A stretch of 57,028 bases of DNA, filler included, from Bipalium vagum (Eukaryota): assembly GCA_037834085.1 (NCBI GenBank). It is 3 parts of 3 records of this genome, joined end to end, with 100 filler letters (N's around TTAATTAATTAA, not from the genome) between each part and the next. Parts side by side here need not be neighbours in the genome. Positions count along the whole stretch, not along the records: positions 1 to 19,763 come from JBBMKC010268308.1; 2 more parts are not named here. One strand, 5' to 3'. The position numbers were made by a program, and so were the translations under genes. Positions within the stretch are counted from its first letter, which is position 1. The number at the start of each line of letters is the position of its first letter. The notes beneath the pieces were generated by a model, which saw nothing but the letters and a program-made list of their open reading frames with translations, was not told the DNA's origin and searched no databases. Of this stretch, positions 1 through 20,096 are shown piece by piece.

Positions 1-59
1 AAATATTTATTATTTAAACTAATTAATTAATTTGTTTGAATAATTGTTATATTAAAATA

Positions 60-523
60 TATAATTTCGAAATGACTTTTGATAACTTATCAACTGATAT
101 AAATGTAACTAAAAATTTGCTTATGAGGTTTAGAGATGGAGATGAGAGTTTGTAGGATTCAAAACATGGACATCGACCTTTGTCTATGAGTTTGGACTAG
201 TTTAAAGAAAGCATTGAGTCAGATCCTCAACAATTCAGACGAGAACCTGCCTATAAAATCGATTGTTTCCTGAAGATCAATTTTGACAACTTGCATCGCC
301 TTGGAAAAACATTAAGCATGGAAAATGGATTCCTCTTGATTTGTCAGAGAGCAGCAATAATAGTAGTATTCTCATCTATTCTTCATTGCTCTTGTGGTCT
401 AAAAATAGGGTATTCTTAGATTCAATTTTAACATCAGATGAAAAGTGTGTTCAATTCGACAATCCACATAAAAAATTGCAATGGTTACGTAAATGTGATG
501 GTGATACCAACCCCAAAATTTAA
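60..523 (+). mobile_element. Decayed mariner, 5' part
   Basis: Frameshifted transposase remnants: FRDGDESL, GKWIP, LTSDEKCVQFDNP. Confidence 0.75.
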
Positions 524-1325
524 TCAATCAGGTTCTTTTTAGATAAACTAATTTCATCACTGGTAAGCATTTGAATTTCAAGAATTGATGAGTTTCTTGT
601 CATGCAAGGAATTGGTCTGTGTGGACTTGAGTAAAACAAATCCCTGTATAATCAGATGATTCTCTGCCGCTGCATTAAGCATATTTATTATCACTATATT
701 TTCCTACCTAAATGAGATGGATTCTGCTTGATTATAAGTTTGAATCAGTCTCAACTGGCCTACAGGAGCATGTGGAATCATTTTATCAGTATCCCTGTAT
801 CAAAACTAAGTAAGCCTTTTTCGGAATAAATTTTTTTCTCACTTCTATCTTAAGTATCATTTTCTCTGATTTTGAGATCCCTCCCTATTATGTAAGATAT
901 GGTTGTACAAACTAGAATTCTGCAATGTAAAGAAAAATAGGAAATATGAAATGTCCAATTATCCAAAAAAATATTAAAAAGTCCAATAAAAAATTATTTA
1001 ATTAATATATTCCCCATTGGATTCTACAGATTTTTATATAATTCGATATAAAATTTTCACTCTGTTTATTAAAGAGTAAAACACGTTTATGTTTAGGTGT
1101 TAAAATAAAATATTCTAAATTTCGTGATTTCCAAGACTGAATTTAATAATATAATTAAATTAATTAATGTTAATTAATTAAAATTATTTGCTCGTTTAAA
1201 ACTGATGTTCTCAAATTATTAACCACTAGTTACATTGTGATATTTTTATTTCTGGATAATTAACTGTCACATGGACACTAATAGGTTTCATTAAATGTAT
1301 TTGACAGATTTTCCTTTTCATCCTT

Positions 1326-4300
1326 TCAGTTCAATACCATAATAAATGGTATATCAATGTCATAGGCATTTGGTTGCTAAAGATAAAAATTTTATTATTA
1401 TTTTAAAATTTAAAATTCAACTTTATTAAAACATCAAAAATTTGAGAAATGTAACTCAAAATAAAACGCATAATTATTTTTAACCTTTTAAAAGTTTATT
1501 TATCAACCACAAATAAAAATAAATAAATATTTAATTTATAAATGATATTTAATCATTTTTATTTTAAAGTTCTTAAAGATTTTCCTTATAAAACAGTGAA
1601 AGTTCTCTTACTAAAATATTAAATACATAAAGTTAATAAATAAATAATTTTTAAATGAATAAATATAAAAATAAACAGTTGAAATTAAATAAAAATTTTT
1701 AATTAAAGAATGGTTACGTTCTCTGACTAGGAAATATGTGACAAAATATAAATTCGAGGAAAATGGATCCTTGATAATATGATCCATGGCATATTCCCAT
1801 CAATTTATCCCAACAGAATCTTTACGGAAACTAAGAATGTTTAAATAAATTAGACATCAAATTATTCGACTCGCAGTTCTAAAGACAATTATTACGGTCT
1901 GTTTTCGTCCAATCAAATCAATGTAAGGTAATATAAAAAGCCTTCATTTAACATCTTTTCAGTAGTGTATTTTCTTATTACTTATCATGTGTAAATTTGG
2001 GTTTGTCGCACTTTTAATATTGATAATTGGTAAGTTTATCTCTTAGAAATTTACGATCAATTTTTTGTTATAGGAGTCTCCATAGGTATGGCAGATGGTG
2101 ATTCTAAGAATTTCGACGAGGAGTTCGATCAATATGATGATCGAGATATTGATAATAGAGAACGTCAATTTATGAAAATGAGTAAAAGAGCACTCCGATT
2201 AATGAGAATGGGAAAGAAAGCTGTGAGGCTCATGAGACTTGGAAAAAGAAAAGATAAATTTTAAGAATTTTTACAATTTTAAGTAATTTATATTTTATGA
2301 ACATATTTGAAATGTTAGATTAAAAATTGCCTGTTGACTTTCTTGGTTTTTATAAAAATTATTCTTAAAATTCATAAGACGAATTGAATGAGAAAGAATT
2401 ATCAATCATCAATATTATTATTATTATCATTATTTTAAATTATGCACGAAAAATAATCAGTTCTACCAATATTACTTAGAGAATTAAGTTTATGTCGGTG
2501 TTAGACATTTTCCATCTAAAATTGAACATTTTTATTTTAATGAAATAAATAAATCACATAATATTTAAATAATAAGAATAATTTAAATAATTATAATGAA
2601 ATTAATTAACATTTCTGTGACATGGAGATCAGAAAATTGAATATAAAGCGAATTTTGGCAAAATATACAATATATAAAATTAAAACGAAAATTTATATTA
2701 TAATTTAAAATATAAATAAACGATAATAAAATGAAAAGACATCTCCAAAGATTTATGAATTATTCACAATTGAATTATTTCTTAATTTTATTAAAGGAAA
2801 AAACTATTTTTAATTATTCATATAGTCTTTCTGTATTCTTATACTTCTTACATTTCTTGGACATATAATATTATGAATATTGCTCTCCTATTCATAGACC
2901 TATTTCATAGATTTTTATTATTTATATTATACAATATAATTTGCGAATTATTCATTGGTGTGGTATTATTTATAAACTAAATATGAAAAATCCGAATTTT
3001 CAACATTAAGAATTAAATGTACATAAAAATAATAAGTGTCACAAGTACATCTTTGGTACAGAGGTTTTAGCTTATAAAGATATTACCCAAAAATATTTTA
3101 TATTATATTTACACGGGAAAACTAGTGTGAACATATTGAAGCTAGTACCATAGGATCATCATTTAATTAAAAATATATTTACCATTATTCTCCATGCTCA
3201 GAATCTTAAATTGGTGAATATATTGGCTATAAAAATATTTATTTCTGTTGATGTTCTATTTCATTTTTATATTTTTTTATACATATAATTTACATATTAA
3301 TTATTTTCATTTTCCAAAATAAATAATTAAGAAAGTTGCTTCTTTTTCACTTATAATGTTACAATATATATATTTGTAATATTAATTATAGTTATTAATA
3401 ATTAATAATTAATGCATTCATAATTTTAATTATTTTTCTCTACTCAAACAATTATTATTAGAAGAATATTTCTTTCTATGCAATTTCAGTGGGTTTTTTA
3501 GATGAACATGATTATTATAGTCCAGTTTCATAATTCTTCTTTTCATTACATACAATATAAATATTCCTAAGAAATATTTATCATAGAAAAAATAATTATT
3601 GAACTGTAATAAGATGTGGTATGAAACTGATTTCATTAAATATAATGTGTATTTTTAATTAATTATTGATTAAATTTTTGTTGGATAGTCGTCTTTTAAT
3701 AAAAAAAACTATATCTATATCTAATCCTATTTTAAATAATTTTAATTATAATATAAAAGTTTTTATAATAACAAAATCTACAAAAATTAAAAAAGGTAAA
3801 ATAAATATTTTAAATTTAATTAATATTAATAATTCTTTAATTTTAAATGATATACATATACTCCGATAATTATCCGTACGATGATATGTAAATATTTTCA
3901 AAATAATTTTTGTATGGAAAATCAACACTTATGAAATAAATTTAATATAATAAAATAAATAAACGGATAATTATTGGAGTATCTGTATATGATTAATAAA
4001 AACATAATAAACATATTAGTAAGATATTGTTGTAAAATATATATTTAAAACTCTTTGGGTTTAAAAATTTAAATACAGTCGTCGCTCAGTTATTTGAATG
4101 CTTAGTTATTTGAACTTTCAGTTATTTGAATAATTTTTTGACATGTCTATTCAAACAAAGCTGGAAGATCATGGATTTGTTTTAAAATAAATTTTATTTG
4201 TAATTTAGTTATTTCAATAATTGAGTTATTTGAACTTTTTTGAAATCCCCACGAGTTCAAATAACTGAGCGCCGACTGTAATTAAATTTATTAGTACAAT

Positions 4301-7300
4301 AACTAAACAACTAAAAAGTGTAAAAATTGAATTTTCTTTATTCTCAAGTCCATCTAAACATAAAAAATAAATAACTAATAAAAGTTAATTAAATAACCAC
4401 TAGGAAAATAATAATATAACATTCTTTCAAATCTACCTTCACCATGTTCATAGGTAGTATACCTAAACTTTATTGTTGTCAATAGACAAAAACCCGAGTT
4501 GGATCTTTTTAGAAGACATAGTCATATTGGTAACCACAAGTCCATGAATATCTGTAGTCTTTTGTTATATGGAAACAATTCTTGAAGTTTAATAAAAATG
4601 CTTGTAATAACTAGCATTATTAAGCTCTCAGATCTGTCTGGATTTAATGATTTAAAAAGCACCTTGTGTAGTTTGACTTTCTCTTAACCCGACCAAAATG
4701 GAAACTTTTTCGGAAAATTGTTTGTATTAATTTAATATTTTTCAAAATTCCCGCAATATTCAATCTTTTGATAGATTGATTTATTATAGATATTGTCTGG
4801 TTATTACCAAAAATAATAACTTATAAGAAAAGCCCGAAATTTCGGACATTAAATCTGGCAATCGTTTTAACAACGTATTATCATAATTATCAAATATTTA
4901 TAATTCTTAATTAATATTTGTACTCTANNNNNNNNNNNNNNNNNNNNNNNNNNNNNNNNNNNNNNNNNNNNNNNNNNNNNNNNNNNNNNNNNNNNNNNNN
5001 NNNNNNNNNNNNNNNNNNNNNNNNNNNNNNNNNNNNNNNNNNNNNNNNNNNNNNNNCATAAAAGGGAAGATTATTACTCTATATTGACTACAATTTTTTT
5101 ATTAAATCCATCTTTGTGGGCTTTCCAATTCTAATACAGACTGACTGAATTTTGATCTAATTAGTCCGGTTAAGGACAACTAGCTTACGTATTAAACTGA
5201 ATTATGATACTTCTCTAATATATAATGATTAGCTTATCGAAGTTGTGGATTGGAAGTGGTCGATTGCCAAAATATAATATGATACACCAGGATTACTTTA
5301 CAAGATTTACAATATTCATTTATATTAATTTAAAATTAATTAAATGAAATTTTTTAAACATCATTGTTAAAAGATATTAATGAAAATTATTAAAAAGTAA
5401 CAGATCAAAGAAAGAAAGAAAATTAGAAATCTGGAATATTTTTATTTTTCAGAAATTAATTTTTTTCTATTCTTAAATTATAATTTAATTTTTGATTTAG
5501 TAAAACAAAAAATTAATAATTAAAAATGTCTGTCAAAACTGAACATGTTGGAGTTATACAAAACTACAAATATTTACTTATATGTTACAGGCAAAGTTAT
5601 GAAACCATCAATAACTTTATTACTGTTTAGCACATACTTGAACTTGGTTTGTCATTTATTATTTTAGTATGGAAAATCTTTCTTACTGCGTAAGCATCAA
5701 ATATTTTTCTATCATTAAACTGGCTTTGAATTTAAATGGGGTCGAACAACCATCGAAGATAATGCACCCAGTGGACTTCTTAAAAGATCTATAACATCGG
5801 AATTCATGAAGCATGTTCATAAAATTGTACTCTTAAAATTACTGAAGGTCATCTCAAACGAAAGATTTTTCATATAAAAACAGATCTACAAATGAAGAAG
5901 TATTGGAATATTCTTTAACCATTCAACAAAAACTCTTTAGGAAATAAATTTTTGAACACCATTTGGATCTTTTTAATAAAAAATAAAAGACTGTATTTGT
6001 TGTTTCATAACTATGTACGAAACTCGGATTTACCAACATGATCCTAAATTAAAACGAAGACATTTAGATTGAATTGAAGCAGGATTTTTACTTCCAAAGC
6101 AGCTGAGGGGAGAAAAAGATTTTTAAAATGTGATGACAATATTTTTTACCTTGAGAAACCTAAGCTATAATAGCAACTCTGAATACTGTCTAAGCCTATT
6201 AGATCAGTTACTATTAGGTTGTTCGGAAATAAATTAGCGTTTTATGTAAGGCAACTTTCGATGATTTTATTGTATATAAAATATGTATGAATGGCATCAT
6301 ATGATATTCCAAATTGATGCTTAGATGATAAGGATTCATAATCTATATCAATTTGTTTTACTGCTTTAAATTAAAGCATATTTTGGCACAGTTTTAAAAA
6401 TGTTAACAAACCAGTAAATTAGAGCAATACATCTCTAGGAATTTAAACTTGGAAATTCTGTGGCAGATGCAACCAAAAATATAAACAGAGCTTTCAGAGA
6501 TGGTAATGTAGCAGAATCATCTACCCGTTGGTGGTTTGCAAAATTCCGTCTTGGAAAATTTGATCTCTGTAATGCAGAGGGTAGTGGGCGAAAAACTTCA
6601 GTGAACAATGATGATTTGGGGATTTACCCGTTTTAGATTTATGAAAACAGAAAAATCATGGAACGAATAGACATGGAATATTTAATTTAATTGAAGTGGT
6701 ACTTATGCGTTTATTACAAAATGAAACACTTTTATTATCGTCATATGACGATTAAAAATAGTTCAACTTGTAATTGATTCACATTTTTATACATTCCTCG
6801 CAGTGCCGCTCACATATTTCCTTTTGATATTAAAAATCATTTATACATTCATTAGGACCCGGATCTTTATTTTATATTTAAGTTAAGATTCCACAATTTA
6901 TTTTCAAATATTTTTGTGATATTATATCCCGGGTTTTTAAAAACATTGTGAAATAAAAAACAATTTTATCATGTGAAAAATCTGTTTGTTCTCTTTGTTA
7001 TTCTACGTCCATTTTCATACCATTTATTAGATACTCGATATATTGTTTATATTCTGAAACGAAAGTGGTTCAAGTCAACAGGATGTAGTTTTATGACAAA
7101 GTAAGGATATTAATATTGATAATAGATTTTAATAAAAGCCTTATATATAAGTGTAAGGTTTCGAGGTTATAATTATTAATATAGAATTTTTTTATACTAA
7201 ATGGGTTCAATTTCGTCGAGCAGTGGGTCTGGTTCTTGGATGGGTTCTTGGTCAGGTACATTATATTTTGTAGAAGATCCTTACAGTTATAGAAGCGTTA

Positions 7301-10300
7301 AAATGGAGGACATGGAGGACCAACTTGACATGTCAGAAACAATTACAGAAATGTGGCTTTATGAAGAATTGATGAGTTATAGTATTTTTTTGATTGGTGT
7401 AGCTTGTCATACTTTTATAATTTTTGAAACTGAAAATTGGTATTGGTCAATAGAAAAAGTTTCAGATGGAATTTACATTCATAGGTCCAAAAATTTCTGG
7501 GATTTGATTAAAAAATTTAATGGAAAATCACGAAAACTTTCAATCAAACAGTCAAATTGTAGAACAATATATGTCACATTGAACGATCTTGTAAATTACA
7601 TTTCAAGAAAAGAACTCTGCATCAAATACGACCTATTGTATCATAACAATTGTCAAGGTTTTGCACACAGACTTTTTCAATATCTGAAGTGAGTATAATA
7701 AAAAATTAGACTGAATATTCGCAGTGATTTGGAAATGAGACTTTTTCAGATTTTTTATTTTTATATCTTTGTCATAATAAATAAATATTATTAAATATAT
7801 AATTATTACCATTGAATGCGTCTCCAGCAGTTCAATTCATCTCTATCTGTATCTTGGTCAATATATATATTCTCTAAAGGACATGAAGCTTGGCTGATTT
7901 GTGGCATTGTTTTAGTAATGTAGTCATTCGGGAAGGAAGTCTTGGTTTACAAAAAAAAAAGAAAAAAAACAAAATATTGTACCTATTCACACAATTGTTA
8001 TATTAATAGCACAAATCAAAAAGTTAAATTACTTTTGGCTTGAAAAACCCCTTTATTTATCAGATTTTGCTTCAAGTGATTTTTATCGATTCAGAATCCT
8101 AAAACAATTTCCTAAAGTTTTTCATCAAGCGTTTTTCATTGAATGAAGAACCAATGATAGCCGTAGACCAGTAAACAATTTTATGAAAAAGCTATTAGGA
8201 AACCTTCCGAAATTTTAACCATGACATAAAATATTTGAAGAACTCGACTGTTTTGTATCAAACATTGTATCAAATAAGTACCGGGAATTAAACTAGGAAA
8301 ACTGAAATAATTAATTAATTATTCAAAATGATGTGGTCATCACCAAAGTATTCTCTACTTATTTCAACACATAAATACTGGTTCACTAATCAAAAAATGT
8401 TTGGTGTGCTTTTTGTGGTGTGACCTTCAGATCCTTCTGCACATTTTGTTTGATATCTTTAAACTATTCAAATCGCCTTCCATGGAGTGGTAATTTTTGT
8501 ACATACATACTCATAAGTGGTGATATTTCTCAAAATCAAAAAGAAATTTTATCCTTTATCCATCTTAATTATTAATTAATATATTATTTTATTAAGTTTC
8601 AAATAATAGTTTTTATTAGTAGTATCTAATTAAAGAAAGAATACAAAGGACAACTTAACCATACTCTTCAGGAGTTTCTTGCTCATAATTTATTATTTTT
8701 CAACCAGCATAGTCTGATATAAAGGAATTCTTATTATGATCTTTTATACTCTCGCTTAACGTAAAAATATTTTTCCGAGAGATAAGATTAAAGAAAACTC
8801 AAAATACCTAGAAATTTAATATTCTTATCTTGAAATCCCAAGCATATCAAGTTGTAAATTTTTCTCCTTTCTAATAAATATAAAATATCCGTTTTATAGA
8901 TTTGGTAAATGTTTCAGACATTAGAGAGCTCTATTAATCCCAATCTGAAGAAATTCAACATTTTCATTACATTTTCTTTTTGTAAGGATAATAATACAAA
9001 ATTAAAACAGCAGGTGAACCTAGCATTTGTGGACCAATGATTTAAGTTTGGTTAAAGAATGACCATTTGGGATTTAAGGATTCTTCTCATAATATTCTGT
9101 ATTTCTACAGATTTTGTTGTGACCAAAACTTTATCAACTTCAATAAATGTTATTACCAATTTACTTATAATCAATTCTTTCATGAATTACTGATTAAATC
9201 AATGTGTGACAATTATCACCTAAATATAATATTGACTCTTTGTAAAAGTTCGTGCCTGATTTTTAAATACTTTATTACCAGAATCAGAACGTTATAACTA
9301 ATGTTTTATATTAAAATGAATCGTACTCTTTAGGTTAAATATTATAAGGTATTATTTTAAGTTAAATGCTCCTTTAAAAATTATATATATATACCTTGTA
9401 GTATTATTTAAAATATGAATATAGATAGAATAGATTTACGTCATGTAATGTTATATGAATTTTATAAAAGTGTAAGTGTTGGAATTGCTTAATAAAACGT
9501 TCATGGACTATTAAGAAATGATTCGACTATTTCGTGATGGGCATTTTTACTTGGAAGATAAATCTCGTTCTTCTTCAGCAATTAAAGACAACATGATAGA
9601 AAAAAATTCAAGGATTTCAATACAGAGATTTCTACTAGCCTTAGTTTCATTATTTTGACCGCCTTTCGTTATTTAAAAAGTCAGGAATACGTTTCTCCAT
9701 TCATACATTGACTAAAAGACAAAACTGCAGCATATGGATATATCCATATCTCTCCTTGTACGAAATAAAAATGAACCTTTTTGGAAATATTAGTAACCTG
9801 GATGAAAGTGAATCCTGTACAATAACATGCATTGTAAAAGAATCGAGAAGAAAGCCAATGAAAGCTCAGAACAACTGTCAAAGGCTGATCAACACCAAAT
9901 GAGAGTAATTCTGTGTATTTGATGAGATTTCAGAGGCCTTATTTATTATGAACTGCTCCAACGTAGTGAAACAAAAACCGCAAATAAATACCGTAATCAA
10001 CTCTAAAGAAACGATGATAAGATCGGTTAAATGCGTCCAGCTTTAATAAATAGGAAAGGAATAATTTTTCATCATGATAAAGTCAGACCCCACATTGCAT
10101 ATAAAACCTTAGGAAAACTACGAGAGTTTGAATATGAAATTTTACAACATCCTACTCACTCCCCAGACATAGCACCAATAGATTTTTATCTATTCAGGTC
10201 ATTAAACAACAGTTTGAGTGAAAAGAAGCTTTTTCTAAAGAGGTTTTTTTAAAAATCATCTCAGCAACTTTATCCTAGAACACCCAGGTGAATTTTTAAA

Positions 10301-13300
10301 TCTGAGATAGAAAAAATTGTAGACTTTTGGAAAATAATTTTAGAGAGAAATGATGACTATGTTAATGAATCATTTTATTAAAATTTTGACTTTTACCAGT
10401 TTTTAATAAAATCGGACTCGAACTTTTGCAATGACTTAATATAATATTTATTTTTATACTATTTTTATTGTAAACTTGTTAATTACCAAAATAATAATTA
10501 AATGTGAATTGAAATCAAATTAGATGACCATATGACAGAAACCTGGATTTTAAGAGTCCCCATGAGACTATTACTATTTCCATTCTCTGTCACCTACCAT
10601 AATACGAAAATAAAAGGTTGGGGTTAATTATTTTCAGAGTCAACTTTAAATTATAAATAATCTAATTAAGCTTGATGACAGGGTTGTAGAAATGAGTGGT
10701 GAATTAATATGACTACGAGATTCATGATTTAAAAGTAAAAGTTTGTGACCTTGAGAGAAATAATAAACATGAAAAAGAAAACAAAATCAAAACATTTTTA
10801 TATAAAAAATAAAATTAATCTGATTCTCCTGCAACGAACAAACAATTAAATTATGAATTAAATGATTAGTGATCCGTCATAGAGACCTTTTCAAAAATTA
10901 TCGACCTTGTTAATACAGGGAATTTTGCTTTTTTCACTTGGTTTATTTATTCAATATTTCAGTAAAACAAAAAAAAGGCCAAAACGTCTGCAAACGTGTC
11001 CAAAATCAATTAGATAATTAAGATATATATTAGAAGAAAAATAAGTTTGGTATTTGTGTATCGATTTAACAGTTTTATACTTAGGCTGATAGGAAAGCTT
11101 GTAAATCCGTTACTTTAAAAAAACAGAATCAAAAATGCTTTATGTCATTATCTGTTACATGAGATCGACCCAATTTCTGAAGCATTTTTTCCATTGTGAA
11201 ATTGGTACCTCAAAGTCCAATACCGACTTCAGACAACAAAAATTACATTTTTCGTTACATTTGTCGTTACTCCCTGTTTCAGAAAAATTTTGGAAGCATG
11301 TTTGTTATTGTAAGGATTAAATTTAACTAACAGTTATAAAGAGTCATTTTGTCATAGTTGTAAATATTAAAATCATTGTATTCATCCTGCTTGTTACTAA
11401 GAACCTTAATAACTTGCTTGGTTGCTCCATAATCAGCAGACTTTATCACCAGATAAAATTTTAAAAAGGACATCACAACGATACAATGAAAGTGGTGTCC
11501 ATAATAGCAAAAACCGATCTGGACGACTTAAAAAACTAATAAATTACCAGATAGAGAAATAGAAAAATATTTTTTATCAAATAGAAGGTACACTGTCGAA
11601 AAAATTAGATCTGTGTACAATCAATTCAACGAAATTAAAATTAGCACTTCGACTATGAAAAGTAGACTGAAGCAAGTTGGCTTATATGGACGTGTAGATG
11701 CTCGTAAACTGTTATTAAGACCAGTTAACAAGATAAAAAGGCTAAACTGGGCTAGAAAACCTGACCAATGTTATTAAGCAAGTTGGCTTATATGGACGTG
11801 TAGATGCTCGTAAACTGTTATTAAGACCAGTTAACAAGATTAAAAGGCTAAACTGGGCTAGAAAACCTGACCAATGGAAAAATGTGCTTTGGACAGAAGA
11901 ATCCAAATTCAAACTTTATGGTTCAAAACGACGTGTTTTTGTTCGAAGATATTCAGACGAATGTTTCGTGCAAACTATAAAGCATGAACGTTGCTCTTTC
12001 ATTGTTTGGGATTGCTTTGGTGAAGAAAATTTTGAGTTTATAAACAGAATTGAAACAATAATGACGAAAGAAATTTATAGGGACATTTTGGAATGACAAG
12101 TATTCTCCGGCGAAAGATTATTAGAAGATCTTCAAAGTCAGCAAATATTAGAAATAATTGAATGGACACCACAGTCACCAGATCTCAATCCGACCGAGTT
12201 GCTTTGGGAAGAACTTGACAGAAATGTGCGAGAAGAGCAACCATTTTGTTTTGAAAACCTTTGGCACATAATGCAATACACCTCAAAACATAGCATAAAT
12301 TAATCATCGTATACCAAAGATCTGTGCTGCTGTAATAAAGAAAAAATTCAAAAATTTAAATATAAGCCTGTTGTGATTAAGAATTTTAAATAAAAAATGT
12401 TTAATATTTATTAGTTTCTGTGTTTAGCACAAATCACATTTGAAAAAGCTTATTTATTCCGCAATTTAAAACCAACCTCAAACTTTCTGTCAGTAGTGTG
12501 TATCTTTTTCATAATTTCTTTGGAAACGGGTTTGAGTTGATTTTAAAAATTAAGCTTATAATTTTTTTAAACAAAACTTTTTATTTATAGTGTCCAAATA
12601 AGTTCTTGCCGATTTTATTAAATTGACGTTTCATGAAATATTTTATTATTATTACTCAGAAAATCAATTTGTTTTATTAGATTAAATTCAATCAAACATG
12701 TAATTCGATTTTTCAAATATCTTTAAGTAATATTTAAATTTTTTCAGCAGTCAAAATGGCGAACAATAATTCAATCATTCGTTCCCGCTTACTCTATGAG
12801 TTTAAGCTTGGTTCCAATCCCTCAGAAGCTAGTGGAAACTTTTGTACGGCATTTGGAAAAGGTGCATTAAAGGATAGAAATGCTTATTATTGGTTTGAGA
12901 AGTCATGAACAATGACGATTTGAGAAAGGCAATCGAGTCCGATTCAAGTCAAACATGTAATGAACTTGGTTTCATATTTAATGTCAGCGAAGAAACAATC
13001 AGACTGCATATGCATCAGATTGGAAAGAGATGGAAATTAAGCAAATGGGTTCCACGTGATCTAACACCAGAGAATAGATTTCAGCGACTGACAATATGCT
13101 CTTCTCATCTCAGTCTGTTAAAGGTAAAGCCATTTTTCAGTAGAATACTGACATGCATTGAAAAGTGGGTTATGTATTCTAAACAAAAGAGAACACGTCA
13201 TTGGTTATCTCCTACGGATTCCTTGCCACAAGTTCCAAAGGATGAACTATTTCAGAAAAAGCTTTTACTGTGCGTTTGGTGGACTTGTGAAGGAATTATT

Positions 13301-14353
13301 TATCAAGAGTTCCTAAAACCGAAAGAAACAATAACCTTTGAAATCTATTGTTCTCAATTAGAAAAATTTTTACCAAAACTGTTAGAAAAACACCTGGCAT
13401 TAGTGAATAGAAAAAGGTTCTATTTCTTCAAGACAATGCTCGGTCACATGTAGTAAGAAAAAATCTTGACAAAATAACGCAACTTGGGTGGGAGATCATG
13501 TGCCATCCACCATATTCCCCTGATCTCTCGCCTACAGATTTCAACTTATTTCTTAATCTTGATAATCATTTGGAAGGAAAGAAGTTCACAAATGAAATGG
13601 ATTTAAAAATGGAAGTGTCCAATTTCTTCATCAGTAAGAAAAAAGATTTTTATGAAAATGGCATTATCAAGTTGTAAGACCGTTGGGACAAAGTCATACA
13701 ATGTCATGGATCATATTTTGATTAATAAATATATCTAAAATTAAAAATGTTGACTTTTACTCTTTTTTAAAAATCCGCAAGAACTTATTTGGACACCTAA
13801 TATATAATAAAACTATTTTTAATCAAATTTTCTTAATAGTACATCTTTATTTTTTAGTTTTTTCTATTGCTTTTTTTATTTTTATTATTGAAATTTGGTT
13901 ACTAATATCAAATATTTGTGTTCCTTTCAATACTTTTCTGTAGTTAAATTGATGCAAAAATTAATATATTAAAAATAAATATCAAACTTATAACCTTGAG
14001 GATTTAATTTTTCAAAGTTCACAAAGAGCTTTGGTAAATAAACTGTTAGATTTCAATGATAATAATATTTATCAAACCACTTGAACCTGTAAAACTGAAC
14101 AAGTTCTTAAAATTCTCTCTGGATCTGTGTAAGATATTTATTGATAATTCCGATACCCTGTCATATTTATCATAACAAGCTTCAGATTTCAAATGTATTC
14201 CTTCCCAGGTTAGAATTACTTTTCCTTTAAATGTAGCTCGAAAGCAAAACTAAGACAATAAAGTGTCATGAGCTTATCCTCAGAGAGGATGAGTGTTTAA
14301 TAAATTACCCAATTAGAGAGAAGATTTATTTCAGACAATTCCTTAATCCTCAT
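1326..14353 (-). CDS. Predicted divergent Roadblock/LC7-fold (dynein light chain roadblock-like) protein, 97 aa; exons 14353-14309, 14249-14078, 4462-4437, 1376-1326
   Basis: GT-AG exons with consistent phases (0,1,0) give MRIKELSEINLLSNW/FCFRATFKGKVILTWEGIHLKSEACYDKYDRVSELSINILHRSRENFKNLFSFTGSS/GILPMNMVK/QPNAYDIDIPFIMVLN*. By eye it aligns with DYNLRB: GKVILTWEGIHLKS vs GTMVVNAEGIPIRT, and AYDIDIPFIMVLN vs APDKEYLLIVIQN, with similar total length. Minus-strand AATAAA at 1250-1245. The 26-nt exon is the least certain part. Confidence 0.55.
1932..1963 (+). promoter_or_regulatory. TATA box and initiator of the neuropeptide gene
   Basis: TATAAAA at 1932-1938 lies 29 nt upstream of the A in an Inr-like TCAGT (1959-1963). 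The ATG is at 1987, and a candidate ATTAAA poly(A) signal is at 2319-2324. Confidence 0.6.
1987..2264 (+). CDS. Myomodulin-like (MPL / NPP-6-type, AVRLMRLamide) neuropeptide precursor, 77 aa; exons 1987-2029 and 2074-2264
   Basis: Spliced translation MCKFGFVALLILIIG/VSIGMADGDSKNFDEEFDQYDDRDIDNRERQFMKMSKR-ALRLMRMG-KK-AVRLMRLG-KR-KDKF*. Shows a signal peptide, an acidic spacer, dibasic cleavage sites and amidation glycines. The intron is 44 nt (gtaag...tag). AVRLMRLamide is a known flatworm peptide (schistosome NPP-6, planarian MPL family). Confidence 0.93.
4076..4278. mobile_element. pogo/Tigger-type MITE (~203 bp)
   Basis: 23-bp TIRs CAGTCG(T/G)CGCTCAGTTATTTGAA with 1 mismatch, TA on both flanks, and internal repeats of AGTTATTTGAA. 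Confidence 0.88.
4928..5076. other. Assembly gap
   Basis: Run of Ns. Confidence 0.99.
5526..6210 (+). mobile_element. Decayed mariner (Himar/irritans-like), 5' half; continues at 7916
   Basis: MSVKTEHVGVIQ, EFKWGRTTIEDNAPSG, TMYETRIYQHDP; ends at NSEYCLSLLDQL. Confidence 0.75.
6213..6618 (+). mobile_element. Mariner 5' fragment (left TIR plus HTH region), nested
   Basis: TIR TTAGGTTGTTCGGAAATAAATTAGCG; EFKLGNSVADATKNINRAFRDGNVAESSTRWWFAKFRLGKFDL; truncated at VNNDDL. Confidence 0.85.
7201..7692 (+). CDS. Intronless permuted papain-fold (PPPDE/LRAT-like NlpC/P60) cysteine peptidase or acyltransferase, 163 aa
   Basis: Intact ORF with the catalytic His in HTFIIFET preceding the Cys in YDLLYHNNCQGFA (permuted His-then-Cys order). 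The N-terminus MGSISS fits N-myristoylation. TATATAA at about 7144-7150 and AATAAA signals downstream (about 7697 and 7776). Confidence 0.8.
   Translation: MGSISSSSGSGSWMGSWSGTLYFVEDPYSYRSVKMEDMEDQLDMSETITEMWLYEELMSYSIFLIGVACHTFIIFETENWYWSIEKVSDGIYIHRSKNFWDLIKKFNGKSRKLSIKQSNCRTIYVTLNDLVNYISRKELCIKYDLLYHNNCQGFAHRLFQYLK
7916..8250 (+). mobile_element. 3' half of the mariner starting at 5526
   Basis: Resumes with NVVIREGSLGLQKKK, then AQIKKLNY...SDFASSDFYRFRILKQF (YSPDLAPSDF region). Confidence 0.7.
8265..8500 (-). mobile_element. Mariner 3' fragment
   Basis: Minus strand LHGRRFE*FKDIKQNVQKDLK...CVEISREYFGDD; TIR-like TCAAATAAGTACCGGGAATT. Confidence 0.65.
9415..10440 (+). mobile_element. Decayed mariner
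   Basis: MNIDRIDLRHVMLYEF, IFHHDKVRPH, HPTHSPDIAPIDFYLFRSL; right TIR-like CGGACTCGAACTTTTGCAATGACTTAA. Confidence 0.9.
11420..12500 (+). mobile_element. Decayed Tc1-like (DD34E) element with an internal tandem duplication
   Basis: VLWTEESKF, VQTIKH..SFIVWDCF, EWTPQSPDLNPTELLWEELDRNVR; right end ...CTGTCAGTAGTG. Confidence 0.85.
12586..13800 (+). mobile_element. Near full-length mariner with both TIRs; best preserved copy but non-functional
   Basis: TIRs GTGTCCAAATAAGTTCTTGC(C/G)GATTTT; ATG at 12756; WVPRDL, CVWWT, LQDNARSH, HPPYSPDLSPTDF. Has a deletion after WFEK and a frameshift near 13415. Confidence 0.95.
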
Positions 14354-14939
14354 AGATCGAATCGTTTCAGAAAAGCAATTTTTAGATTTTTCGGGAAAAT
14401 TTTACTGATATTTGCATATTTTTAATTTGACTTGCTTCATCATTTTTTTTTGTTTAAATTATAATTTAAATAATTTCAAAGGGAAATTATAAACATTTTA
14501 ATCGGCTGAAAAATCAGCTCATTTTATTACGGAACACAATTTTTGATTTTCATTAAATATGTTTAATATTAATAAACTTTCTTGTCGAATATATTTCTTT
14601 GATTTTAAGATTTGTATAATGAATTTTATATTTTCGTGAATTTGCAATTTATTATTTCATGCTCAATTATAAACATTACTACTTCTTATTACTTAATTGT
14701 AAATAATGATTTAATTAGTGACAGGGTTAGTGCGGATAATATAAAAAATAAAACTGCAATTATAGTATTAAAACTCTTACTAGAGGCAAAAATGTTTTCT
14801 AATTCTTTTATTTTATTTATATTTAGTATAAAAGCTTAATAAGCTGAAAAATGAATTATTTATTTATCATTTTTTTATTATTTTTTTTTATTTTTTCTAT
14901 TATTTTTATTTTTACTATTTTTATCATTAATAATATTTC

Positions 14940-14953
14940 TTATTATTTTTTTA

Positions 14954-14989
<36 letters not shown>

Positions 14990-15090
14990 TATTAATTTAT
15001 TTTTTGTATTTTATTATTATTATTATTATTAACTGTGGTAGTACTGGTAGTTATTATAATAATTATAATTATTATTATCGTTATAACTAA
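14940..15090. repeat. (TAT)n microsatellite and low-complexity tract
   Basis: Visible TAT reiteration. Confidence 0.85.
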
Positions 15091-15467
15091 ATAAGTTATG
15101 GTATTATTTTTTTCTTTTCATTATTATATTTTTGTTATTATTTTGAATAACGCTTTTTCAATCGTATTTCGTTCTAAGATAGGAAAACGAGAAAGCTTTA
15201 AATAGGTTTACAGTGAATATAAATAAAGCAAATTTTATTTTAAAAATATATTTTATCATTAAATGGAGAAAAAACAAGTTTCTTAATTTAAATATTTATT
15301 TTATTATTTTTGAAAATATTTTTCAAATTTTCTAATTTGCTAAAAAATTTTCGCTGTTGTGTGAAGATTTTTTTTTTAATTGAAATGAAAAATAGATAAA
15401 ATTACATTTCTGGTCATATTTTTGATTCAGATATTGTTACATTTAATGTTTTAATTTATCTTTTTTC

Positions 15468-18400
15468 ATGAAAATAATAATGTCATTTTGTCATTTTAGT
15501 TTATCTCTTGTGTATTCTGCTGTTTTTGGCCCACAGTGACAGCCAGTGTAAGTTCAATGCTTGTATTTCTGATGAATTATTTTTTAGTGGATTATGAATC
15601 CCAAGCCGACCCTAATAAGGGTACAAATGTAGATTCGTTCAAAGTAAATGAATGGCAGAGATATTTAAATTTCCATAAAAAGAACATGAAGAACATTCTA
15701 AAAGATTTAAAGAAAAATAGGAAAAAGAAGATCTCCAGATCATCTAAAGGTATGATTAAAATAAATTATATAATAAAATATTGTACGGATGTTACATGAA
15801 GATCAAAGATTTTTGTTTTGAATCTTGATCCTACCATGATGAACATAAAAAGATAAACATAATTTATTTTTCTCTTAAATCTTTTTTCATAATATTTTTT
15901 AAACATTTCACTAAGATAAAATACCAAAGACCTAATTTCATAACGTCTTTTTATGGAAATTATATATACGTATTAATGGACGAAATCAATATCTCTCATG
16001 AAGAGCAACGTATATCGTTGATGTATGATTTCAAATCGAGCCTAACTGCTGGTCAGTCACAACGACGCATCAATGAAGTCTTTGGATACTACGTTTTCGC
16101 TGGACCTTATATAATTGCTTTAGAAAGCTCAGTAGTGAAATTTATATCTAAAATCATCCAAAAGATGGTCGACCGCCAGTTATTGGCAAAGAGTTGTATC
16201 GAAGTAGATCCACATATAATATGACTTGCGCTTTCTAAAACTTTTAGTGTCAATTACCCCGCTTGCTTATGTCATTTGAAGTAGGTCAAAAAAATTGATT
16301 TCAAGCGGACTGACAGACTTCGACCGTATGGATGCATGCATAACATTATTGTCTAAAAAATTTCGTTATGATTAGCTTAGCAAAGTAGTCACCACAGATG
16401 AAGAATGATGTATTTTCTAAGATGGCAGAAGCAGCTGGCTAAACAATTCAAAGAAAAATAATGGTTTGTGTTTACTGTTATATAAAAGATATAATTCACT
16501 GAGAAATGCTGGGACACAATCAAACTGCCAATACTGGATGATATTACCAACTATTGCAGGGAGTAGCATATGGAATTTCAAAAAAACGATCAGAATTAAA
16601 TAATCCATTGTAAAAAAATCAACACTTTATTTATGAAACTCTTTTCTGTCATCTTATTTCTAATTTTTGACTTGCATCATTTATTTATTTTCTTCTTAAC
16701 TACCATCAACATTTTTATTGCTTTTGGATTGATTTTGATCTTGTTTTTCGACAGTCATTGGCTTGTTTCATTGGCGTTGGTAATCTTCGCCATTCAACAG
16801 CAGAAGAGAGTTGCGCTTAACAGTAAAAACTTAACCCTTCTTCGGCTGCGCAAATCTTCGGCATAGGAAACTTACCCAACTTGCCAAACAAACAGACAAA
16901 ATCCAAAAAGACAGCATAAAAATATCTTATCTGAGTCTAGAAAGTGCAATTCCCAACTCGCCTCACACATCACTCATTCGACTATACCGAGAAAGAAAAC
17001 CCATGTCCTACGTCAAAAATATATCACAGATTTTAGAAAAAAAAAGAAAGAACCTTATTAATTGCTTCTCGGAATAATCGGTGGGTATTTGAGTATGTAT
17101 ATGGTTTTCAGGAATTGCCCTTTCAGAAAAATCATTTATACATTACCCAACACCATAAAAATACATACAAAAACCCTGCCTCTTCATTATCTTTTCAACC
17201 TAATACTAGTGAGCATTAGTATATCAGGTTAATTTGAAGATAAGGAGCAGGGATAAATATTCCAACCAACAAGTATATCGTTCAATATGACGTGAGCAGC
17301 GGATATTGGATTGTATCCTTGTTGTTGGTTGTAGAGAAATTATATTTATCATTTTTGTTCTTGTCCCACTATATATAAAATACAATAACAATTAATTCTA
17401 CTAATAATTTATTATTAATAACAAAACATTTATTCAATCACCAAATCTTAATTAGATTGCTGATATTGTAATTCATTGACTAGCTTTAAAATACGTGGTT
17501 GTGTTTGTGTTAATGCCAACATCATTTCTGCATTAACATTAAGTCGGTTTCTTGCTTTGCTTTTCAATTACAGAAGTGTTGAAAATCCACTTTCACATAG
17601 ATTTGTTGAAGCAAAGGGAATAAAATTCTAAACGCAATCATTGTGACTTTTTGATATGAGTGATACATAGCACACCAGAACTGAGTTAGCAGATTTTCGT
17701 CATATAAGTGGCGAGCCGTAGAATCGTTCCGAAAGTTCAGGAATATTGGATATATCAATGGAATCAGAAAATGAATATCGTACTAGTAAAGCTTCTTCCT
17801 TAGTCAACTCAGGGAAATAATACACAAGATCATTTTCAAGAGATTGAAGGTGTTTTGTGATTTCTTTTTTTAAATGGACATTGGTTTCGCATTTAAATTC
17901 TTCTATTAAACTGGATATTTTTTCAATCATTACCATGTTTCCTGTATCCATTTTACTTTGCCAGTTTTGCAGTTTGACTATGAAGGCGACTCAGCTTGGG
18001 AAACCCTGGTTTATACTAATATTTATATTGTACAAAAATTTCAATTTGTTTATTTATATAAATTTTATGCGGCGCATTCCTCAAAATGCAAAATCAAAAT
18101 GAACAATTTAGACATTGCAATTTATTAATTTTAAAAAAAGCCAAGCAGCTGCAGACACACAGCGAAAACTATGAAGAGTCTACAGCAAACATGAAAAACA
18201 GAAAGAAGATTTGATTTATCAAATTTCGTTCTGGAAATTTCTCGATTTGATACATCACGTTTTGGTACGCAGTTCAACGTAAAAAGACCAATTAAAGAAT
18301 ATTATCAAGAATGAAAGGCATATTACCGTTCGTGAGATCGCCAAGAAATTTGGTTTCTCGAAAACAGCTATTGATGATCATTTAGAAAATCTTGTACATT

Positions 18401-20096
18401 TTAAATGCTTGATATTTTGGTCCCACAAAACTGGATGAAATTCAGATAACTCCTCATATCAATATTTGTGACATGCTCCTCTAGTGAAATTAAAGCAATC
18501 CAGTTTCGAAAAACTTGATAACGGGTGGCGAAAAATGGATTGTATACAATAATTCCCAACGCAAAAGATAATTAGCAAATGACAGTCTGGATTTCACATA
18601 GTTACTTCACAATTATTACTATCTGTTTCTCTCGTTACAAAATTCTTTGGATGGGAAAACATTTGCCTCCGATGACATCATAAAATCTTACCTGGACGAT
18701 TTCTTTGCTGGAAATGATAAAAAATTTTGTAGAGATAGAATAATGAAACTCATTATTGAACAAAATGGTTAATATTAAATATAATAAAATTGTGGCTTCG
18801 TACATATTTTTTACTTTTTATGTTATAATAATAACCGAAAAGACTTCCGGACAACCTAATATTTACAATTCCTGTTGAATGGAACACAGTATACATTATT
18901 TTCTTCACGTAAATATCAACTTTTGACTCTTATTAAATCACCTTCAAGAACCTATACTTTGACCTCACGTAATGACAAATTCTCAAAAAAATATACCTAA
19001 GTCTTATCATCCGACACCCAATTATTCATGTAAAAGATTTAGGATTTGCTCTCCAGAGATTTTTAGCACTTCTGCCATTTGATTTATAGTGATCCGGGGA
19101 TCTTTATTGATCGGATTTTGAATAACATCCATATTTTCATCATCAATCATATCTGATTCGAGAGTGAAAGGTCGTCAAAGTATGTTTTGAACTTCGAAAC
19201 TTAAGGTACCAACTAGTAACGTTTCAGTTGTCCACAGGATTTCGTCCCAAAACATAATTAATTTTATTAGCGATGTATGTTGCAGACATTTCATTTTTAA
19301 AAAATTATGCAATCAATACTCGGAATTCTTCAAAATTAAATACAATATTTTTTTCAGTCATTATTGTTAGTAACGTTGATATTATTAGACAAGTCTTCAA
19401 CATCCATTTTCAAATATATATATTTGTGTATCACAAAACTATTTAAACTTTTAAAGTATTTCTTCATCTTTTCGATGTTTCTGATTATTTTCTTTCGATT
19501 CGAGTCTGTCATCTCGTAGCATCTGTCGTGGATCATCTTTTTGATTTCGTAAGGTCCCTCGTATCGATCTTGATCTTTGGTTCGACCTTCTTTCCTAACC
19601 ATGACCCTTTCTCCGATCGTAAACTCCCTTCTGGTTTTCGGGCTACTCACCTCTTTTGATTCTTGTCTGATTTTCTCAATGGCCTCCTCTCTAGCTATTT
19701 GATTCCCACTGAACCATCTTTCTCGATTTATTTTCCGACCTAAAATTAATTCCGCTGGACTCANNNNNNNNNNNNNNNNNNNNNNNNNNNNNNNNNNNNN
19801 NNNNNNNTTAATTAATTAANNNNNNNNNNNNNNNNNNNNNNNNNNNNNNNNNNNNNNNNNNNNTTATACACTGATAAAAATAATGGTTTTTCTCTTTTCC
19901 AATTTCTTATTTCTAATTATCTTGTGATATTTTGATAAAAATAAATTGAATGTCTTAAAAGAAATTTGACTCTTAGATAATAATCTTTTAAATAAAATAT
20001 TCAATTGAGAAATTTATCAGACATTAAGTTTCTTTTTCTATCTTAGAAGGAGAAATTATGAAGAACTCGTCTCTTCTTGATTTTTTTCAAACATAA
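15468..20096 (+). CDS. Predicted orphan secreted protein (~96 aa); exons 15468-15547, 15588-15749, 20047-20096
   Basis: Phase-1 GT-AG introns (40 nt and 4.3 kb) join ...FVILVYLLCILLFLAHSDSQ/LDYESQADPNKGTNVDSFKVNEWQRYLNFHKKNMKNILKDLKKNRKKKISRSSK/EGEIMKNSSLLDFFQT*. Strong pyrimidine acceptor at 20046 and AATAAA at 20111. ATG 15468 is in frame only if one T is removed from the run at 15486-15489; otherwise an unseen upstream exon splices to the AG at 15498-15499. Confidence 0.5.
15976..16600 (+). mobile_element. Heavily decayed mariner
   Basis: QRISLMYDFKSSLTAGQSQRRINEVFG; VVTTDEE. Confidence 0.7.
17450..17990 (-). mobile_element. hAT (Charlie/Buster, ZBED-like) transposase C-terminal fragment
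   Basis: EITKHLQSLENDLVYYFP, FWCAMYHSY, NLCESGFSTLL, KARNRLNVNAEMMLAL (hATC dimerisation domain). Confidence 0.85.
18085..18859 (+). mobile_element. Internally deleted mariner
   Basis: MQNQNEQFRH, LITGGEKWIVYNN, YYLFLSLQNSLDGKTF; right TIR AAAGACTTCCGGACAACCTAA followed by TA. Confidence 0.85.
18870..19330 (-). mobile_element. Mariner 5' fragment (HTH region)
   Basis: IDDENMDVIQNPINKDPRITINQMAEVLKIS..ILNLLHE*LG. Confidence 0.6.
19450..19763 (-). mobile_element. Ty3/Gypsy LTR retrotransposon integrase C-terminus (GPY/F)
   Basis: Open frame SPAELILGRKI...FTIGERVMVRK...RYEGPYEIKK; runs into the assembly gap. Confidence 0.85.
19764..19863. other. Assembly gap with artificial six-frame-stop linker
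   Basis: 44 N + TTAATTAATTAA (19808-19819) + 44 N. Confidence 0.97.

Follow-up and report, generated by a model that had tools for sequence, protein, structure and literature searches.

A complete PPPDE/DeSI-like gene beside a truncated mariner within an older mariner of Bipalium vagum: a probable by-product of transposon break repair

The genome assembly of Bipalium vagum (GenBank GCA_037834085.1) is AT-rich and comprises 440 Mb in 272,664 contigs. The window analyzed here, by which we mean the whole stretch of DNA under study, is 57,028 nucleotides long and consists of three parts of three records of this assembly, joined by 100 filler letters between each part and the next. All window features described below lie in the first part (positions 1 to 19,763, from JBBMKC010268308.1; contig C268308, hereafter the 19.7-kb piece). 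Between about 5600 and 8200 this piece contains a nest of transposons: an old mariner is split by an insert which begins with the left end of a younger mariner and continues into a complete small gene, with its own TATA box, an intact open reading frame (ORF) and poly(A) signals. The features of the nest are as follows, in order along the sequence.

5607 to 6211, plus strand: outer (old) mariner, left part; start approximate
6212 to 6213, no strand assigned: left TA target dinucleotide
6214 to 6618, plus strand: inner (young) mariner, left 405 bp
6619 to 6622, no strand assigned: left junction bases GGGA
6623 to 7913, plus strand: captured gene segment of 1.29 kb (578 bp upstream, coding sequence, 221 bp downstream), delimited by paralog alignments
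7144 to 7151, plus strand: TATA box, TATATAAG
7201 to 7692, plus strand: intact single-exon ORF of 163 amino acids, PPPDE/DeSI-like, with His70 and Asn150-Cys151
7776 to 7785, plus strand: two overlapping AATAAA poly(A) signals
7914 to 7915, no strand assigned: dinucleotide AG
7916 to 7917, no strand assigned: right TA dinucleotide
7918 to 8175, plus strand: outer mariner, right part; end approximate

The two outer parts are halves of one element. The left part is 70-77% identical at the DNA level to many genomic copies, and its tblastn partners among the transposases of its relatives include ...DETWIYHHDPKLKRE...YYRSLLDQL; the right part is 67-69% identical to the relatives of the left part, aligns by tblastn with the C-terminal half of the transposase, and reads ...IREGSLGLQKKK... 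through the SDFYRFR region. Three contigs (C201878, C216934 and C205774) match both halves in the same order and orientation, and in their alignments the halves abut. A related transposase is uninterrupted across the site (...YYRSLLDQL-DLQ-IRQKRPGLQKKK, by tblastn), one relative keeps an open stretch of transposase (...KGKTINSEYYRSLLDQLDLQIRQKRPGLQKKK...), and across the site a related ORF is SLLDQLDLQIRQKRPGLQKKK. In the window, SLLDQL is encoded at 6193-6210 and NVV-IREGSLGLQKKK from 7917 onwards, with zero residues lost between the two. Since the related transposases read through the site, all window DNA between SLLDQL and NVV is an insertion. An initial annotation of this DNA had proposed that 6211-7915 is an insertion into a mariner, and the contiguous halves in the three relatives bear this out; the objection that the halves might come from different families falls away, as both belong to one Tc1/mariner family and are adjacent in intact relatives.

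The boundaries of the insert could be refined. The initial annotation placed a TA on both sides, and this is correct, but its left boundary (a TA at 6209-6210) was 1-3 bp off: comparison with the full-length young copy on C31902 places the left TA at 6212-6213, and in all aligned copies TA directly precedes TTAGGTTG. On the right, the outer mariner restarts directly after the TA. The halves abut in relatives, while the empty site can be resolved only to 1-3 bp, because the outer element is too decayed for placement at the level of single bases. The outer mariner is far older than the rest of the nest.

As annotated, the insert begins with a mariner left terminal inverted repeat (TIR) and a helix-turn-helix (HTH) region. 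The TIR (TTAGGTTGTTCGGAAATAAATTAGCG, 26 bp, 6214-6239) shows no mismatch to that of its family and has TA immediately upstream, and the HTH coding region (6439-6555) matches the Pfam domain HTH_48 with an E-value of 1.9e-10 (41.2 bits against a cut-off of 24.1), as in the N-terminal HTH of Mos1-type transposases. At least 40 genomic copies match 6214-6618 at 91-94% identity, and in all of them the similarity is lost at 6618, in mid-element and within the HTH region. The full copy on C31902 is about 1274 bp long and has TA at both ends (ta-TTAGGTTGTTCGGAAATAAATTAGCG ... CGCTAATTTATTTCCGAACAACCTAA-ta). Measured against it, element positions 406-1274 are missing from the window, a loss of 68% which reaches to within 0-3 bp of the right terminus. 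The truncated fragment consequently lacks a second TIR and the catalytic DDD region, the latter being present in other genomic copies only, where it was read by eye and not by domain scan. The absence of a right TIR, already stated in the initial annotation, was confirmed in two ways: a pattern search of the whole 19.7-kb piece allowing up to 3 mismatches returned the left TIR as the single occurrence, and an inverted-repeat scan of the same piece found no inverted partner for it.

The family to which this fragment belongs is abundant, with hundreds of copies, most of which are end-only (MITE-like, MITEs being miniature inverted-repeat transposable elements) and lack the interior. Using one public sequencing run (non-RNA, stored as assembled contigs, and possibly the assembly's own source), we found that the summed contig depth along the fragment falls from ~16,600 (6258-6351) through ~2,700 (6446-6539) to ~700 (6540-6633), compared with ~23 for unique DNA. 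This drop points to frequent abortive gap repair in the young mariner family, of which it is the usual trace. A 644-bp element on C93681 is an example of an end-only derivative.

At the left junction, all mariner copies cease to match at 6618, and the paralogs of the gene begin at 6623; the bases GGGA between them are either filler or mariner sequence (AAGA) with two changes. The initial annotation described a switch to about 580 bp of upstream DNA unrelated to transposable elements (TEs). The switch is real (6619-6623) and the upstream DNA measures 578 bp, though not all of it is free of repeats: about 6644-6775 resembles a short dispersed repeat (L046, L047), of which ~180 bp, 69-87% identical to the window, are common to C241842 and C188516. 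An old small repeat was thus already present in the DNA upstream of this gene family. The TATA box lies ~55 bp 5' of the ATG and is identical in all three paralogs, with the proximal upstream region around it 91-92% conserved among them; the ORF at 7201-7692 is open, as had been reported, and both poly(A) signals are likewise kept in all three paralogs. At the right junction, the dinucleotide AG separates the last position homologous to the paralogs from the right TA. On this side the full mariner copy on C31902 terminates in ...aacctaa, followed by ta; AG may be either filler or the terminal bases of the missing right TIR (...CTAA) carrying one change. Mariner excision leaves 2-3 terminal bases on the flank.

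The gene segment has close relatives elsewhere in the assembly. One, on C202253 (L037), is 84% identical over window positions 6623-7808 and carries an ORF of 159 amino acids; the other, on C202210 (L036), is 90% identical over 6868-7913 and carries an ORF of 163 amino acids. The latter contig stops at the equivalent of 6868, and the upstream part is held by the 386-bp contig C15551 (L045; 79% identity over 6623-6936). C15551 overlaps the end of C202210 by 69 identical bases, and C202253 has these 69 bases in identical form as well, a probable reason for the contig break. Homology between C15551 and C202253 extends at least 40 bp farther upstream than the 6623 equivalent, past the left breakpoint of the window, and C202253 shares a further ~0.8 kb upstream with C220326 (L050) at 88-91% identity. 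On the other side, C202210 continues past the 7913 equivalent into DNA that is not mariner. Because the paralogs extend past both breakpoints, the window segment represents part of a larger ancestral locus, and the window copy is derived: a paralog-type locus was the source and the transposon nest the recipient, and not the reverse. As in Pack-TIRs (TIR transposons into which host DNA has been copied), a parental copy is therefore found elsewhere in the genome, represented by C202253 and by C15551 together with C202210.

Some further details of these contigs may be recorded. C15551 and C202253 are 97% identical over the upstream 386 bp, compared with 88% over the remainder of the loci, a contrast pointing to conversion between the paralogs or to a haplotype contig. 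Relative to C202253, C220326 carries a 1.2-kb insertion (390-1612) whose flanks overlap by 5 bp, possibly the target-site duplication of another type of transposon. The C202210 locus (L036) matches other contigs only at L036 positions 1-217 and 1130-1308, and contains internal simple repeats at about 2488-2763, near the junction.

The chimera itself was found once. Neither the whole insert nor the gene segment alone detected a second chimeric or mariner-linked copy in genome searches, and a 121-bp probe (6560-6680) across the 6618/6623 junction matched only the window, a result that in such a fragmented assembly is not absolute. The initial annotation had looked to multiple copies of the insert, or of a 6618/6620 junction, as support for a mobile gene-carrying unit; this assembly offered none. 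Likewise, we saw neither capture between two TIRs of the same family nor several copies with the same junctions at different targets.

The age of the two parts of the insert can be compared through the changes that are private to the window. For the mariner fragment, private divergence is 4.2% of columns, counted against the majority base of 17 other copies. For the gene segment, where changes were polarized with two paralogs, it is 4.3% upstream, 4.8% in the coding sequence and 7.5% downstream (106 bp). With their equal private divergence, the mariner fragment and the gene segment are of the same age, which fits a single event.

The same comparison bears on the suggestion in the initial annotation that the ORF was kept intact while the transposons around it decayed. 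The ORF is open, but the suggestion was overstated, as the inner mariner fragment is of the same age and the coding sequence evolves no slower on the window branch than its flanks (4.8% vs 4.3-7.5%). On this branch we count 18 nonsynonymous and 5 synonymous changes, giving a ratio of nonsynonymous to synonymous rates (dN/dS) of ~0.83; pairwise values are 0.7-0.8, and under simulated neutral change with 23 substitutions the frame stays open in 18% of cases. Across the three paralogs dN/dS is high, at 0.4-0.8, and may reflect either relaxed or diversifying selection. Neither dN/dS nor the branch-specific rates thus give a clear signal of purifying selection. The sole hint of constraint is the distribution of private indels, with 4 in 430 non-coding columns and 0 in 480 coding columns on the window branch, and AT-rich non-coding DNA is more prone to indels anyway. 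In paralogs B and C the coding sequence also evolves faster than the flanking DNA (4.2-7.3% vs 2.8-4.7%). Five nonsynonymous changes cluster in codons 64-69 (7390-7407), just before His70, and turn FWVDEARH into FLIGVACH; those at codons 64, 65, 67 and 69 are private to the window with respect to both paralogs, while codon 66 was read against paralog B only. Judged by its sequence, the captured copy might be functional, with an open ORF and with catalytic residues and promoter kept, yet the signs of selection are weak.

We next turn to the encoded protein. Its score with Pfam PF05903 (Peptidase_C97) is 19.6 bits, below the gathering threshold of 29.2; a word-based protein search gave one distant match only, an exact look-up of the protein in public assemblies gave no match, and a profile search of Protein Data Bank (PDB) sequences found no significant match to solved chains, only chance matches to TRPC4. 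In contrast to the single word-based match, a profile built from five sequences and run against 1.84 billion representatives retrieved 674 proteins at E<=0.001, 341 of them at E<=1e-10. Most are 165-200 amino acids long. The members named in the output, which come from the clam Mactra antiquata and the nematode Caenorhabditis bovis, are annotated as hypothetical proteins, and the neighbors in the Atlas are unnamed eukaryotic clusters, chiefly of Nematoda and Arthropoda, with PPPDE, TseH and CLN5 as the nearest named ones. The family is thus large, mainly animal, and without a name in the sources checked; its named members are from nematodes, arthropods and molluscs. It also includes proteins of 350-750 amino acids with 2-4 tandem domains (P0003, P0005 from Mactra antiquata, and P0006 from Caenorhabditis bovis). 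The gene contexts of two distant family members showed no link to viruses or TEs. A possible splice donor at the stop codon (GAA/GTGAGT), which would make the ORF a first exon, was considered and rejected, since family members end 0-20 residues past the Cys motif at the typical length of the family.

In an alignment of 71 family sequences, H70, W82, S83, E85, K86, R95, R111, Y143, N150, C151 and F154 are invariant or nearly so. H70 and N150-C151 occur in at least 90% of the 71 members and are present in the window copy; going by aligned ranges and not by an atom-level check, H70 and C151 would be the equivalents of the catalytic dyad of DeSI-1. Among the 71, 42 match PF05903 at E<0.01, with a best value of 3.7e-9. 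An AlphaFold2 (AF2) model based on this alignment reached a predicted local distance difference test score (pLDDT) of 88, compared with 66 for an earlier model from 5 sequences, with which a fold search had been uninformative. The better model matches DeSI-1 (2wp7) with a Z-score of 8.8 and a root-mean-square deviation (rmsd) of 3.5 over 102 residues at 21% identity, followed by TseH (Z 7.2), CLN5 (Z 5.8), Aichivirus 2A (Z 5.3) and PLAAT4 (Z 4.7). The top Foldseek match is human PPPDE1 (3ebq, probability 0.97), though with an E-value of just 0.13. Model and structural comparison agree on a permuted papain-like fold. On the strength of the model, the protein appears to be a divergent Cys-His hydrolase of this fold (PPPDE/DeSI-like), lying outside PF05903 by Pfam's threshold, and its predicted mode of action would be that of a PPPDE-type thiol hydrolase or acyl-transferase.

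With DeSI-1 and DeSI-2, the deSUMOylating isopeptidases of PF05903, and with the wider permuted papain group (CLN5, TseH, PLAAT/LRAT and the picornavirus 2A H-box/NC proteins), the window protein has the fold in common, and His70 and Asn-Cys 150-151 stand at matching places. It differs from them in the strongly conserved motif of its own family, WWWSIEK...GITIQRSK, in its N-terminal MGS... start, and in the sub-threshold score mentioned above. This N-terminus (MGSISSS, 7201-7221) resembles an N-myristoylation signal; similar N-termini are found in paralog B (MGSSSST) and at an internal start of P0001 (MGSSGSK), and paralog C has MAS instead. A more distant paralog of 168 amino acids on C270217 (L042, 6912-7418) is 26% identical in the family alignment and 34% locally (residues 67-159). 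In it Asp replaces the conserved His and Leu replaces the Cys, and from its sequence it is likely to be catalytically dead.

Taking together the observed nesting order, boundaries, copying direction, single-copy status, matching ages and protein fold, we think it probable that the insert duplicates a small host gene at the DNA level and in single copy, and that it is a by-product of the repair of a transposon-induced break, through abortive gap repair in which the template was switched. The old mariner would already have been in place and decayed when a young mariner of ~1.27 kb integrated at a TA within it. Transposase would then have cut the young copy, either excising it or cleaving at least its right end. 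Repair synthesis would have re-copied the young element from its left end, with the sister chromatid or homologue as template, and would have proceeded for only 405 bp before the growing strand switched to an ectopic locus of the paralogous PPPDE-like gene. There it would have copied 1.29 kb, comprising the TATA-box promoter, the 163-codon single-exon ORF and the poly(A) signals, and the strand would finally have been joined to the right-hand broken end beside the TA. Having one TIR only, the product should be immobile.

A survey of 370 Pack-TIRs in animals (Tan et al. 2021, Nat Commun 12:4280; PMC8277862) concluded that the single-copy ones arose mostly by gap filling, and expects excision-initiated abortive gap repair to leave large deletions with breakpoints near the termini of the transposon. 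The initial annotation had named three possible mechanisms, a Pack-type mariner, abortive gap repair and a Helitron-like process. Among these, abortive gap repair fits best, because there is one TIR, a 68% deletion, a right breakpoint 0-3 bp from the terminus and its TA, and a single copy; a mobile Pack-type unit accords poorly with the one TIR and the unique junction, and a Helitron with an end that is a mariner TIR. The broader claim, that the gene arrived after the outer mariner, at the DNA level and with its own promoter, is supported, the promoter and poly(A) signals being conserved and a piece of young mariner having come along.

Several points weigh against this account. The bases at the two junctions (GGGA and AG) are without assignable origin, and the TA-to-TA geometry is 1-3 bp off a textbook insertion, in a comparison with decayed relatives. 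No donor exceeds 90% identity, and for the distal upstream part identity to the paralogs is only 79-87%; the fragmented assembly may lack the true template, or later conversion among paralogs may blur the picture. As to the gene itself, the observed dN/dS is compatible with a neutral copy that has not yet broken, and the captured promoter may be silent at the window copy. Finally, the repair mechanism is read back from its end product.

Two or more unrelated events could also have built the nest, and this we regard as unlikely. In one version, end joining placed a duplicate of the gene in a break within the outer mariner; the young mariner landed next to this duplicate, and most of the young mariner was subsequently deleted along with adjoining DNA. 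This version needs two coincidences, with the left terminus of the mariner falling at the old breakpoint and the right end of the gene DNA falling at the matching TA. In the other version, the mariner came first and a random internal break in it was later filled, independently of transposition. In its favor, most single-copy Pack-TIRs stem from breaks within TEs and not from excision (PMC8277862), and for either version the junction bases GGGA and AG resemble scars of end joining. However, internal breaks lose a median of 4.6% of TE size (PMC8277862), and a right breakpoint at the very terminus is atypical of them; in addition, the equal private divergence of both parts favors one event over several.

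A poorer candidate still is a chimera of left mariner end and gene that formed elsewhere and moved in as a unit through a cryptic right end, by Pack-type or one-ended transduction. The FoSTeST model proposed for multicopy Pack-TIRs in animals (PMC8277862) offers a precedent, the TA on both sides and the perfect left TIR would suit such a move, and cut-and-paste transposition erases the donor junction, so that its absence elsewhere is not decisive. Against this, the right end has no similarity to a TIR and is ordinary continuous sequence in the paralog on C202210, and the unit is single-copy, with no second junction in the assembly. Mariner transposases require two bound ends. The stronger proposal, of a one-ended mariner chimera that carries a complete, expressed PPPDE-like gene and that is still mobile or was so until recently, with mariner-linked transduplication as the means by which this fast-evolving gene family spreads in the genome, seems very improbable to us; if true, it would amount to a whole-gene 'Pack-mariner' in an animal.

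It is highly improbable that the arrangement is an assembly artefact, with a false join through the high-copy mariner repeat. The number of contigs in the assembly and the hundreds of copies of the mariner fragment would make such a join conceivable, but the sequence past the insert returns precisely to the correct half of the same old mariner, which a false join does not explain. Contigs of the public run also cross all three junctions without mismatches (5953-6238 across 6212, 6589-6993 across 6618 and 7819-8400 across 7915), at a depth of ~18-25, the level of the unique flanks, i.e. single-copy. The mariner side of the contig across 6618 is just 30 bases long, as expected of k=31 unitigs, and this agreement is to be read with the possible identity of the run and the assembly's source in mind. 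The junctions of the insert are genuine in the genome. Capture by a Helitron or other rolling-circle element, for which there is nothing beyond the initial suggestion of transduction of a gene with its promoter, is next to impossible, given a left end that is a mariner TIR, a right end reading ...GTTTTAG and not CTRR, no preceding hairpin in the inverted-repeat scan, no TC...CTRR ends, and one copy.

The remainder of the 19.7-kb piece holds further transposon remains, and no ordinary host gene was seen elsewhere in it. They include a mariner Transposase_1 fragment (E 3e-21), another mariner C-terminal piece, a weak HTH_48 piece, and an ORF with a very weak match to a Tf2-type SH3 domain (E 0.069, far below cut-off) that is possibly integrase-like; these other TE-like regions lie at 10031-10252, 12905-13453, 15976-16224 and 19354-19650. 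Immediately to the right of the outer mariner, 8262-8496 is occupied by another moderate repeat, which matches several contigs at 71-83% identity and is not related to either mariner half.

There is ample documentation from plants, and a catalogue from animals, of host DNA duplicated in association with transposons; almost all of the animal cases are gene fragments. The present locus is a clean and datable case, with both breakpoints placed within a few bases and the direction of copying given by paralogs that extend past them. It would illustrate excision-initiated gap filling, and it serves as a natural experiment on the fate of such a copy, which may turn into a working gene or decay. The PPPDE-like family, with its 674 cluster representatives, merits a description of its own. 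The understanding of how mariners work is unchanged.

The closest known systems are the single-copy Pack-TIRs (PMC8277862), in which host DNA was likewise copied into a TIR transposon by template switching, with a single copy, a parental copy elsewhere and no sign of later transposition. The window unit differs from them in having one TIR and a 68% deletion up to the right terminus, which fits the excision-initiated variant that the authors of the survey regard as the minority; in that a small gene was copied whole, along with its promoter and poly(A) signals, and not as an exon fragment; and in that an older mariner surrounds the carrier mariner. Derivatives of mariner/Tc1 elements with internal deletions, and MITEs, formed by abortive gap repair (PMC3814204, PMC4678618), are alike in that ends are kept, the interior is lost and the breakpoint is internal, whereas here the gap is filled by 1.29 kb of gene DNA of foreign origin and one terminus is gone. 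Pack-MULEs and the Drosophila Ssk-FB4 family share the transposon-associated, DNA-level duplication of host coding sequence, but they possess a TIR at either end, in many cases are mobile and present in multiple copies, and mostly contain gene fragments, none of which holds for the window unit. We thus regard the locus as a new example of a known process, unusually complete in that it comprises a whole gene with its regulatory regions, and unusually well delimited.

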